NCBI GenBank assembly: GCA_002189035.1
Contig: CM007989.1
Location: forward strand, 3,534,001 to 3,598,000
From: Utricularia gibba
Taxonomy: Eukaryota; Plantae; Magnoliophyta
Direction: 5' to 3'
DNA length: 64,000 nt
Below the pieces are notes generated by a model. That model saw only the letters and a program-made list of their open reading frames with translations. It was not told the DNA's origin and searched no databases. Shown here one piece after another: positions 42,961 to 47,183 of the stretch (its first letter is position 1; every line of letters begins with the position of its first letter). Made by a program: the position numbers and the translations under genes.

Positions 42961-45900
42961 CTATACGTCTGCCTGGCTTGTAACAACCTGTGGAGGATGA
43001 GTTTTTTCAGTACCTATAGACGGGTACTTGCAACTCGACGCTGTGTTGAAGATGCCGGAGCTAAATCGGAATCACGACCGCGGCGGAAAGGGAATTCTTA
43101 CCGTATTTTCGAGCAATGTATCATCCGGGATAATGATCTTCATGTGTGGTTTAGCATGGATACTGACCTTTCCCTGGTGATGCCAAGGTAAACAGAGAGT
43201 TTATACAGAACAGCAAAAGAACCAAGACTTGTCTTTCTTGTATGTTACCTTGAGGGTGATGCCGGATCCGAACCAGACATCACCAGTCACTTGGAGAGAG
43301 TCGAGGCCAACGATGCTGGGTATGGACTTGAACCGTTTCCTGAAGTCATCATACTAGGAGAAGGGCAATGTTTTAACAAACGCCCCATTTCAGCATGCAG
43401 CCTACAAATTGTTGAAAGTTCACAAGGCATTACCTTATCGAATTCGGGTCCTAAATGTACAGATGGGTTAGTGGGGTTTTCTCGAGCTGGGTTTCTGATT
43501 AGTGTGCCATCTACTACGGTGTAGAGGTCCGACTTTTTAGAGGAGAACAGGTTATCAGTGCTTCCATAAAAATATGCATAAATAAAAGGACCCGAGGGGT
43601 AGATGAAACTAACCTGCAGCTGAAATAGATCTGTTGTTGAATCAAATGGTAGATATCTGACCTTGGGAACACTCAGCTTAAGATGCTGATCAAACAGCTG
43701 AAACATGCACCCAAAAGTTATACGGGAGACAAGGGAAAAAAAACCATCCAGAAGGTAATTTGTGAACCAAAAGGCTCGAAAGCTTCACAATCTACATAGA
43801 GCTTTGGATGATCATATCCTTCAATCTCAAAATCCTCAAAAGAATATGGTTGTTACCTTAGAAATTGAAGAATTCTCTTGTGCAGTCTGACGCCGCATAA
43901 GCTTTTCAAAAAATCCAAAAGACACCCACCTAATAAAAAAAGAGAACCTCTTGAGCAGAAGAATCATGAGTTATAAGCCATAAAAAAACAGAAGTATCAT
44001 CATGTAACTAACATTGAATGGGTTAATTTCCAGTTCTCTCGCTTCACCTTTCAGATGCCATAAAAAAAAATTAGAGAAAATTAAGATAACAATCCCTGAC
44101 ACAAAACAATTTCTATAGTACTACAGCAAATCAACCTGACCATCTTCATTATTTGGTGTAGGTTTATTCTCCGACAGTTCTGGGGATTTAGGAATAACCT
44201 GCAGATATAAAGACCTGAAAACAAGAAACAGCACACGGTAACAATATGTGCTACACATACCTCGAGACAGCATTCCACATTATTCTGAATCAAGTGATTC
44301 AAAATTTCTGGAATCAGCCTTAAGGAGTACAATTGCTGAATACTTTTTCCCTTTTCAGATTCAGTGACATGTTCTGGAACAATAGATATAGATATTTCGA
44401 GCAAGACCAACTCTTAAATAACAAACTCAATACCAAGAATCAGATTTATACAAAAAAAAAGGATACTGGTGTCAACAACATGAGCAAGATTATTTGAACT
44501 CAGAATCAGAATATAATCTTTCCCCTGTCAGAATCAGAGAGCATAATGATGAGCAAAATTGGGTATAGACCAGAGAATGAAAATACGCTCTTGAAATTTT
44601 CAAGGAATGACAAGGAAATGAACGTAACCTGTGAAAAAAGTGTTTCCAATTTTCCGCTTTCCAATAAAGGGAGGAAGACCTCAGCAAGATTTAAGCAATC
44701 CCTGGACATAAAAAAACCTCATAAATTACAAAGATGAGAGGCAAAGGAACACACAAAAAAAATAAAAAATAAAATAAATTCCTCAAAAAGGTCTAGGTAT
44801 CTGCAGATTACATGAAACTGAAAATGCACATCTTGTTTAGGAGCACTCAACCATGCACAGAAATATGAATATGCATGATTTTAATGGGCATTTCACTGGA
44901 AATAAGTATGACAAGTTGCTCTCTGATACTTTACCCTCCAAAACCTTAAGACTAAAAATGGGTTGTGCACATGCAGTTTATGCAGGTGAGACAAAATGTA
45001 ATTGCATACATTTCATCCTTGTCTTCTTTCCCTTCAGCGGAGTGAGCTGCAAAAGTACTAGTATTTTCCACGCCATACTGAATCAGTAAGCATATGCATT
45101 TATCACCACAAAGCTTAAAAAATAAATAAATTTTGGAGAAACTGAAGTTACCTGAACTAGAGAGTGAATGTTTTTATTAGGATGCTTCTCCAAGATCTAT
45201 AATCAAACAACTCGGAGCTATTTAGTTTTTTATGGACCACGTACCAAATACACAAAGAGGGTAATACCTTAGATACAACATCATGTGTATTAGTGGAATT
45301 AACCGAAACAAGAGGAATATTACACCCAAATTTCGCATTAAGGGCCTGTGATCAGCAAGAATCAAAATAAGGTTAACATGTACAACTTTCTGAACACAAG
45401 CAAAGTGAGGATGGAAATTTTGCCTCAATTTGTGTGACAAGTAAGTCAAGACATGTCATCCACCAAAAGCTTCAGTAAGAGACCTGCAACAACCACAATA
45501 TTTGAGTAAGAATGCTAAAGGAAGTCATCAGCATCCTGACCGCAAGAACCTTATAAGAATACAAGTATCATGAGTGATAGCTAAGAACCCAAGCTTGTGA
45601 ACATAATATAATATCTGTTTTACCAAGGGCATTAAACAGTGTATCAAGGAAAGAACCGTCAAACAGGGCAATGAGAAAGAAAAGTACGCACATGGGACTA
45701 CTCAAACTCGGATCACCATTGAACCTCAAAACTACAAGCCTGTCCAAAAGCACCCTAGTTTCTGAGATATCGAAATCTGCAAAACATGAATGCACAATAA
45801 TCTCAGGAACAAGTGACAACGGGAAAGTTTCAACGCAACAAATATTAAAGCAATTAACGGCTCATTTGCTAGAACGGGTTCACTTGATGGACATAAGAAA

Positions 45901-47183
45901 TGAAACTCCCAATCACATCAAAGAATTAAATTTTAAATATTTATTTTTTCAAGGTATACAAGCACATGGAATTCCATGGGAATTGAAAGTGGGGGGCACA
46001 TAATTAGTTCATCTTACCTTCAGGAAGATCCTGCAAGTTTTCATAAGACATAAGAGACTTTTTGGATATCCTCTCTGCTTGGTCATCTCTGAAACACCCA
46101 GATATTACATAAGCAAAAACCTCAAGAATAATGGAAAATACATTTAAATGAAATCCACTTTAAAAAAGGACGCCAGTCATGCTATCCAGTTCTATACAGA
46201 AGTAAACTTTGAAAAGGCCATAATTTCCCAACATTCATTATGTAAACTCCATGTTCCTGACCACTACGATCCAAAGAGCTCAACAATTGGCTAATGCTAA
46301 TTTTCATGTTGAACAGCCAAAAGGCTGAAAGTTGGCCTTTTTAATGAAAAGTCTTATAAAGATTAAATTTAGCGCAAAATAAGCAGGAGTCATGTCAAGA
46401 GTTCTTTTCTTAATCATGCAAACAATTCCAGATTTTTGCACAGGAGCCACCCGGAAACATAATATCACAGAGCACATGCTGGATATCCAGGATATGAAAG
46501 AGGCTTGTAAAGAAACACAATAATCAACTGGAAGTTACAAATGAGGAAATAACAAGTCGAATCCCATACCTTGTATTCAACTCATCTTTCTCAGCATCCT
46601 TTTTCTCTTTCAGGATTGTCTTGGTGATCAAATTGCAAAATAAGTACACAAACTCTATTGAATCATTTGCGGGTACAGGATATGTTATACTCTTGAAAGT
46701 ATCCAATGGCATGCTTGAGTCCACCAGCCCAACAACGGGAATCTTCATTCTATTAGCCTCCTGAATCACCGAGCTTTTCCTCTCCGTATCGAAAATAATG
46801 ATGCAATCCGGAGGAAGAACAGAAACAAGACTGAACTTTTTATTCCTACCACGAAACTTCTTTGGGCTTGAACTGTTGGTCAGAAACCCTCCTAGACGCC
46901 AAGTTGTATCATTCTTAATTCCAATGGTTTGCGTCATCTGGACTATGATTTCATCGAAGAGGGGATTCGTATTCACAAAAAGGAAACGGGCGTCGTTCCG
47001 CGCAAGGCGGCCGATGAAATTGCAGGCGTTCCGGAGACAAATTAGAGTCTTGTCGGCGTCAATGATGGCCAATGAGTTCCGTGTGCCTTCGGAGAAAATC
47101 TTGAAATGGTGGGCAGTCACACGGCGCCCGATGTGCGCGTTTGTTCTCAAGATTCTCTGGATCACCACAGAATGGAAGGACAT
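42961..47183 (-). CDS. RPS2: Fusion gene: nucleus-encoded mitochondrial ribosomal protein S2 (exon 1, 46570-47183) spliced to a degenerate UGPase-like module; ~18 exons, roughly 570-580 aa
   Basis: Exon 1 has uS2 motifs ([56 protein letters not shown]). Later exons follow UGPase-A in order: [39 protein letters not shown]...[44 protein letters not shown]|GKVSI. Splice phases are consistent; two G-run -1 indels must be corrected (45460-45461 and, tentatively, 45030-45032). Confidence 0.85.

Follow-up and report, generated by a model that had tools for sequence, protein, structure and literature searches.

The uS2m-UGPase-like locus

We analysed a stretch of 64,000 nucleotides from the plant Utricularia gibba (contig CM007989.1; hereafter the window, and all coordinates refer to positions within it). 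On its minus strand, from 47183 to 42961, the sequence supports a single gene that would link a mitochondrial-type ribosomal protein uS2 (uS2m) to a C-terminal module derived from UDP-glucose pyrophosphorylase (UGPase). Splice sites were enumerated around peptide anchors, and the resulting exon boundaries were corrected against the coding sequences of Paulownia, Erythranthe and Forsythia, rebuilt from genomic DNA. The model comprises 18 exons with 1743 nucleotides or 580 codons if exon 4 is taken to start at 45469, and the number and phases of its exons are identical to those of the three relatives. All introns are of the GT-AG type save intron 4, which is GC-AG. Exon lengths differ from those in Paulownia by -9, -15, -6, -6, -6 and -12 nucleotides in exons 1, 2, 3, 7, 12 and 18, so that with the acceptor at 45469 every difference is a multiple of three and a single base in exon 4 is the only indel out of frame. 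Note that the gene is compact, spanning 4.2 kb with introns of 62 to 481 nucleotides, while those of its relatives extend over 6-11 kb.

Exon 1 (46570..47183, 614 nucleotides) starts with an ATG at 47183 and ends at a phase-2 GT donor, ACA AG|GTATGG at 46570/46569, just as an original prediction made from this DNA had it. It joins in frame (AG+A) to exon 2 (46018..46088), whose sequence aligns to that of the relatives and holds a variable linker followed by the first UGPase-derived residues, SLMSYENL in the window and VVPYESL in the relatives. The spliced peptide is the one that had been predicted. Sixteen more exons follow, collinear with UGPase, up to the anticipated stop at 42961.

The S2 half

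As evidenced by profile and structure searches, the 204 codons of exon 1 are those of a ribosomal protein S2. They score 95.6 bits against Pfam Ribosomal_S2 (cutoff 26.1), and the best match of known structure is uS2m of the Arabidopsis mitoribosome (6xyw_Ba, E 1.3e-70), with bacterial S2 proteins at about 1e-16. Identity to the mitochondrion-encoded rps2 of Chloranthus, Anemoneae, Brasenia and Cycas is 55-60%, and the closest relative found is a partial protein from Genlisea aurea, with 88% identity in S2. Judged by sequence, exon 1 is thus predicted to encode a complete mitochondrial-type uS2.

The core shared with the Arabidopsis and cauliflower proteins (AT3G03600; 6xyw chain Ba, 9evs chain A) spans residues 1-194 with an E value of 1e-70, and like the window protein these start directly at the conserved S2 N-terminus, without an added presequence. 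The first 31 residues encoded in the window include nine R, K or H and no acidic residue, which is compatible with mitochondrial import and no more. A clear difference is found at the other end. Brassicaceae uS2m has 212-219 residues and terminates just past the S2 fold, whereas the window gene continues for another 17 exons into a UGPase-fold domain. The short, stand-alone Arabidopsis RPS2 stated in the original prediction is borne out by the 219 residues of 6xyw chain Ba.

One transcript for both halves in relatives

Two intron-less contigs of 2.15 kb, from runs SRR12162049 and SRR8101563, each hold an uninterrupted open reading frame (ORF) of 591 codons that aligns end to end with the fusion proteins of Coffea and Paulownia. 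A third, Lamiaceae-like contig (SRR6324927) has one open frame from 180 to 2024 that begins at the S2 N-terminus. As the genomic fusion genes contain 17 introns over 6-11 kb, these contigs must derive from spliced RNA. In relatives of U. gibba, a single spliced mRNA runs across both halves. A corresponding Populus cluster has 114 member sequences, with contigs of 2.2-2.5 kb among those listed.

The contigs also bear on the possibility that predictors have wrongly joined two genes, a short uS2m and a UGPase-like gene or pseudogene with a promoter in intron 1. If left unspliced, exon 1 would reach a stop at 219 codons and so match Arabidopsis RPS2 in length; an ATG lies in frame in exon 2 of the window, and S2-only models exist in several species. 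Against this, the intron-less contigs, which come from three different runs, read through both halves in a single frame, the UGPase-like part has neither an N-terminus nor a conserved start codon of its own, and the methionine in exon 2 is not conserved. The phase-2 intron at the junction is common to the window, Genlisea and Paulownia, and the appendage is under apparent purifying selection (see below). We consider two separate genes highly improbable and retain the single fusion gene.

In two species, short and long forms are annotated at the same locus. Potato (P0384, P0321) has an S2-only form of 232 residues (isoform X2) beside a fusion of 607 residues, and Quillaja (P0001, P0269) has forms of 286 and 630 residues. 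Two products, a plain uS2m and the fusion, may arise from alternative splicing or polyadenylation after exons 1 to 3. One contig (L005) considered as support for a short S2-only mRNA was rejected; it is unspliced, retains intron 1 and is uninformative.

Distribution in eudicots

An exhaustive HMMER search started from the S2 exon yielded close relatives with lengths of 460-640 residues, and both Ribosomal_S2 and UDPGP were found in seven of the ten closest representatives. In word-index searches with a Linum and a Rehmannia query, both domains were present in every one of the 120 matches listed for each. The orders listed include Malpighiales, Sapindales, Malvales, Fabales, Rosales, Fagales, Cucurbitales, Myrtales, Saxifragales, Santalales, Cornales, Ericales, Lamiales, Solanales, Gentianales and Asterales. 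The two domains are combined in at least 137 full-length proteins of rosids and asterids, and nearly all fusion proteins are labelled 'UTP--glucose-1-phosphate uridylyltransferase(-like)' in the databases. From its sequence distribution the fusion is present in most core eudicots and is not specific to the Utricularia lineage. The original prediction had called for a survey of this architecture and guessed that it occurs elsewhere; it is found in hundreds of eudicot proteins, across both rosids and asterids.

Gene order is shared as well. The gene for plastid ribosomal protein L3 (uL3c) lies directly downstream on the same strand in both the window and Paulownia. A model of 902 residues from Dovyalis caffra merges Ribosomal_S2, UDPGP and Ribosomal_L3; the merger probably stems from erroneous read-through in the annotation, and the model is evidence that the neighbourhood of the fusion and uL3c is kept in a rosid as well. 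Rehmannia glutinosa has three paralogous fusion genes (DH2020_002633, DH2020_002628 and DH2020_002676) on one 87-Mb record, 75-82% identical to each other, which points to a local duplication of the fusion gene.

The UGPase-like half

The C-terminal module of about 380 residues shows clear, collinear homology to plant UGPases of the A type (5weg from sugarcane; 1z90 and 2icy, Arabidopsis At3g03250), from residue 55-62 of the solved enzymes to the C-terminus. The Paulownia fusion protein, with which the window model is collinear at 64% identity, matches 5weg with an E value of 8.6e-108, and the first 55-60 residues of the enzyme are gone, close to the 60 or so of the original prediction. Single exons of the window match Pfam UDPGP in collinear order: exon 5 (45268..45345, of the same length as in the relatives) weakly, at profile positions 95-117 (E 0.066); exon 15 (43434..43532) at positions 346-378 (E 0.005); and exon 16 (43249..43353), which encodes the conserved C-terminal block, at positions 380-413 with 35.2 bits and above the gathering score (cutoff 22). 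The two Pfam domains expected from the original prediction were therefore both found, in exons 1 and 16.

Four elements, the NGGLGTTMG loop, PPGHGD, NSDNLGA and the lysine of KGG, are what we take to be the catalytic and substrate motifs of UGPase structures, and none of them is intact in the window. Exon 3 (45692..45776) encodes the remnant of the nucleotide-binding loop, in which a DNA alignment with Paulownia reveals an in-frame deletion of 12 nucleotides, so that in contrast to the canonical enzyme four residues are missing; its donor position is conserved, and six additional nucleotides at the start of the exon are common to Genlisea. The former PPGHGD site in exon 8 (44629..44701) now reads DCLNLAEVF, and the former NSDNLGA motif in exon 9 (44467..44524) reads SSNNLAH. 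In exon 11 (44136..44198, 63 nucleotides as in the relatives) the KGG motif is lost and the site reads SENKPT.

This erosion extends to the whole family. In an alignment of the 137 full-length fusion proteins and the window model, the KGG lysine is kept in one of the 138 sequences, the second glycine of NGG in seven and the second proline of PPGHGD in none, with the histidine of the latter motif retained in 65. The GDVWFG of the C-terminal block is kept in all 138, and the canonical block FKSIPS...GDVWFG..ITLKGKV is nearly unchanged. Of the nucleotide loop, the residues N, G, L, G, T, G, P and K are retained in most family members, as is SDN. Unlike canonical UGPase, the family has thus lost the KGG lysine, the glycine pair of NGG and PPGHGD, together with the N-terminal 55-60 residues, and this combined loss of N-terminus and catalytic motifs marks the module as a predicted pseudoenzyme and not a UGPase.

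The UGPase-like half of the window is 55-60% identical to those of other Lamiales, which share 65-83% among themselves. While this low identity could suggest decay, the ratio of nonsynonymous to synonymous substitutions (dN/dS, omega) points the opposite way. Rough estimates by the Nei-Gojobori method, from codon alignments on the assumed quartet ((window, Forsythia),(Erythranthe, Paulownia)), gave an omega on the window branch of 0.06 for S2 and 0.20 for the UGPase-like half, with 0.27 in its N-terminal and 0.14 in its C-terminal part. The branch is long, with a dS of about 0.9-1.0, and its omega resembles those of the Forsythia and Erythranthe branches. A long-standing pseudogene is ruled out by an omega of about 0.2 and by the finding of only in-frame indels outside exon 4. 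The sequence data rather depict an old pseudoenzyme whose catalytic motifs have eroded family-wide and whose tail appears to be under purifying selection.

Proposed origin and loss of the tail

In a tree of S2 sequences, mitochondrion-encoded rps2 forms one clade (100/99) set apart by one branch from the nuclear copies, and the latter broadly track the species tree, which fits a single transfer of rps2 from the mitochondrion to the nucleus. The window groups with Genlisea (100/96) inside the Lamiales. Short S2 proteins from Morus, Humulus and Parasponia stand beside Rosaceae and Ziziphus (100/99), and that of Erythroxylum falls within the Malpighiales (100/97). Those of Capsella and Carica lie beside the fusion-bearing Malvales with moderate support (86/75), and Caryophyllales and Crassulaceae make up short-form clades of their own. 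Counting well-supported branches alone, at least four changes of state between fusion and short form are required; note that some of the short S2 models may represent short isoforms or ORFs called on unspliced sequence.

The nesting of short proteins among fusion-bearing clades suggests repeated loss of the tail, and the simplest reading would be one ancient fusion followed by such losses. The short uS2m proteins of Beta vulgaris and Ancistrocladus end in KVVSYSA and KVVPYSA, respectively, which resembles a truncated version of VVPYE, the first UGPase-derived motif, and would be a fossil of a lost tail. Chenopodium is listed with these two. The short form of the Brassicales likewise looks secondary, so that the UGPase-like tail would have been lost in Arabidopsis.

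As to the origin of the fusion, we propose that once rps2 had departed from the mitochondrial genome of an early core eudicot, the surviving copy would have come to sit 5' of a duplicated plant UGPase gene and would have made use of its downstream exons. By their numbering, canonical UGPase (1z90, At3g03250) and uS2m (AT3G03600) are encoded fairly close to each other on chromosome 3 of Arabidopsis. This proximity may be a coincidence or a trace of the origin of the fusion.

Exon 4 and the neighbouring uL3c gene

Exon 4 (45424..45483 with the ancestral acceptor) is the single flaw in the gene model. Neither this flaw nor the GC donor of the exon is mentioned in the original prediction. In comparison with both Paulownia and Genlisea one base is missing beside the GG at 45461-45460, and splicing to the ancestral acceptor, with the exon starting at 45483, leads into a TGA at 45458-45456 and a predicted protein of 265 residues. 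A second AG located 14 nucleotides downstream (start 45469) restores the frame, as 14 and 1 add up to 15 nucleotides, and the reading frame of the fusion is open only via this acceptor or with one base restored in the exon. Upstream of the gap, the ancestral frame still encodes the conserved residues E, F and G. The GC donor at 45423-45422 is common to Genlisea (GAG|GCAATT versus GAG|GCAAAA), and it therefore belongs to a conserved GC-AG intron and is not damage. In Genlisea aurea (KE532031.1, 1540-1602) exon 4 is intact in the DNA and is skipped in the deposited protein model, because of the GC donor, which was evidently not accepted by the annotation pipeline.

A lesion of the same kind is found in the adjoining downstream gene. 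The gene for uL3c lies at about 42641-41700 on the minus strand, and one G is missing from a run of five at 41849-41853, midway through a conserved exon and 1.1 kb away from the fusion gene. The frame switches between ...KKMPGRMG and GTKAKIRKLKIVKID..., and the second frame is open and conserved over the 51 codons that lead up to the natural stop. The lesion is almost certainly a one-nucleotide deletion in the assembly and not a broken essential gene. With such a demonstrable error 1.1 kb away, we regard an assembly error as the likely cause of the gap in exon 4 too. With the base restored, U. gibba would make a full-length fusion of roughly 585 residues.

If the deletion were real instead, two outcomes can be envisaged. 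In the first, the tail is being lost, and the main mRNA, ending at the TGA at 45458-45456, encodes a uS2m of 265 residues with a short tail, much as the UGPase-like module seems to have been lost independently in other lineages. The frameshift shows up in comparison with either reference species, the ancestral acceptor has the stronger context of the two, and the 12-nucleotide deletion has further eroded the nucleotide-binding loop of the window. Brassicales, Caryophyllales, urticalean Rosales, Crassulaceae and Erythroxylum all have short forms that nest inside fusion clades, and in Caryophyllales the tail closes with KVV(P/S)YSA, a remnant of VVPYE. However, 14 exons downstream of the gap are open with intact splice sites and in-frame indels only, and the long branch (dS about 1) has an omega of about 0.2, so that any inactivation would have to be very recent. 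As the residues E, F and G are moreover conserved in the ancestral frame and an assembly deletion is at hand in uL3c, we judge an ongoing loss of the tail to be unlikely.

In the second, the deletion is compensated by a shift of the acceptor by 14 nucleotides (CTGAAG|C, start 45469), and a fusion of 580 residues is made. This would account for the uninterrupted ORF of 1743 nucleotides and for exon differences to Paulownia that are all multiples of three. Nevertheless, an AAG acceptor only 14 nucleotides behind a good CAG is expected to be a minor choice, and its use would discard residues that are conserved in the ancestral frame. A compensated deletion thus also seems unlikely to us.

Overall, we hold it to be probable that the window locus is an orthologue of a core-eudicot nuclear gene of the type uS2m-linker-UGPase-like, including the mechanism set out in the following section. 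Several points weigh against this. As assembled, exon 4 does carry a frameshift, its ancestral acceptor (CAG|G) seems to be the stronger one next to the rescuing AAG|C, and the missing base lies beside a run of two G only and not in a long homopolymer. The dN/dS analysis is rough, with an assumed quartet and a dS near saturation, though the value is still far from 1. Finally, S2-only isoforms are annotated in species that bear the fusion, so that the short form could be the ribosomal one.

Proposed function

In the proposed mechanism, the fusion protein would enter mitochondria without a cleavable presequence. This follows the precedent of Arabidopsis RPS2, for which import without a presequence is reported (Perrotta et al. 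2002, as cited in PMC11792336), and the lack of acidic residues in positions 1-31 of the window protein. In the mitoribosome, uS2m adjoins the mRNA exit channel as well as the 3' end of the 18S rRNA (PMC12672651, PMC13273313), and plant mitoribosomes are devoid of S1, which docks at this place in bacteria (PMC12672651). The S2 half of the fusion would bind there, and the dead enzyme domain, connected through a variable, acidic linker, would serve as a non-catalytic appendage.

For the fate of the tail we consider several options. That it stays on the small subunit is possible, at somewhat less than an even chance. A more doubtful option is that it might be clipped off in the manner of the C-terminal extension of mitochondrion-encoded RPS2, and what is left falls to other roles. 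Removal of this extension of mitochondrion-encoded RPS2 has been reported for cereals (Perrotta et al. 2002, as cited in PMC11792336). Both cereal RPS2 and the fusion have a long C-terminal addition to a bacterial S2 core, but the cereal extension is encoded in the mitochondrial gene and, unlike the UGPase-like tail, is not derived from an enzyme. We saw no homology between the two additions, although no comparison aimed at it was made.

The retention of the loop residues and of SDN in most family members further raises the idea of a tail that might still bind a uridine nucleotide or UDP-glucose and act as a metabolite-sensing or mRNA-recruiting appendage at the mRNA exit channel, which we regard as quite improbable. 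If true, such a tail would, in most eudicots, link translation in mitochondria to the status of sugar nucleotides, and this sensing would be invisible in Arabidopsis and cauliflower, the sole plants with solved mitoribosomes.

Relation to known systems

Chimeric nuclear SDH2-RPS14 genes have reportedly been described in rice and maize, in 1999, by Kubo et al. and by Figueroa et al. As in the fusion analysed here, a ribosomal protein gene from the mitochondrion is expressed inside a pre-existing nuclear gene for an unrelated enzyme. In SDH2-RPS14, the host supplies an N-terminal presequence, the ribosomal protein lies downstream and alternative splicing gives both products. In the window, by contrast, S2 is the first exon and N-terminal, and the host part is C-terminal, provides no targeting signal and would be a dead duplicate under selection. 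An N-terminal ribosomal protein with a conserved dead-enzyme tail is a type distinct from the known presequence-donor chimeras.

The plant mitoribosomal protein mS47 is of enzyme ancestry. In proteins of this type the fold of a metabolic enzyme has been recruited as a structural part of the mitoribosome, as is proposed for the UGPase-like tail. Yet the mS47-type proteins are separate polypeptides shown in the ribosome, and the tail of uS2m is fused to a core ribosomal protein and is a candidate component of the ribosome. Arabidopsis mitoribosomal proteins include mS47 in published listings (PMC6953067).

Fusion sequences are already public, and both chimeric transferred ribosomal protein genes and enzyme-derived mitoribosomal proteins are known. 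We found no description of a uS2m-UGPase fusion in the full-text literature, in a search that covered few subscription journals, so that an earlier mention is possible. The fusion has gone unnoticed because Arabidopsis, the model plant, is without the extra domain. In a 2025 study of Cicuta, the nuclear RPS2 of eudicots is still taken to be an ORF of 208 residues without introns (PMC11792336). If our proposal is correct, this standard account of rps2 transfer, with a short, intron-less and stand-alone ORF, needs revision, as in most eudicots the gene would be an 18-exon chimera the larger half of which is a dead enzyme maintained by selection. The solved plant mitoribosomes are from Brassicaceae only and lack the appendage; if the proposal holds, an extra small-subunit domain of about 45 kDa may be present near the mRNA exit in crops such as tomato, potato, poplar, citrus, cotton, legumes and coffee. 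In addition, hundreds of database entries are misnamed UTP--glucose-1-phosphate uridylyltransferase, and UGPase family surveys and metabolic annotation that rely on this name would count an inactive mitochondrial ribosomal protein as a sugar-nucleotide enzyme. The window itself adds one more orthologue, with a probable assembly flaw.

Remaining exons and rejected splice paths

The other exons of the model, all on the minus strand, complete the UGPase-like half. Exon 6 (45152..45196) has the same length as in the relatives and is 67-73% identical to Lamiales orthologues in tblastn, and exon 7 (45010..45077) is shorter than in Paulownia by six nucleotides, in frame. Exon 10 (44261..44307), exon 14 (43614..43697) and exon 17 (43102..43173) are placed by the gene model. 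In exon 12 (44013..44047), six nucleotides shorter than in Paulownia, the frame was chosen by homology to the Paulownia peptide PKKNWKFIDTM, and exon 13 (43857..43929) has 73 nucleotides as in the relatives. Exon 18 (42961..42987) contains the stop codon TAG at 42963-42961, and the protein ends in SQADV as it does in Striga asiatica.

Several alternatives for the splicing of this part were discarded. Skipping of exon 4, or the use of other donors for exon 3, results in stops, except for a donor at 45688 joined to exon 5 that is without support in the relatives. A putative exon of 39 nucleotides at 43834-43796, resembling the canonical EVDGVKVLQLE, was dropped, as the asterid orthologues are without this segment and their introns contain no relic of it. 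For exons 11 to 13, a path through 44198-44141, 44047-44013 and 43949-43857 is in frame, but its lengths differ from those in the relatives, and it was replaced by the path supported by homology. Between 44198 and 43857 the window thus offers two in-frame splice paths, only one of which fits the exon lengths and peptides of the relatives, and this calls for caution with ab initio gene models in such a compact genome with short introns.

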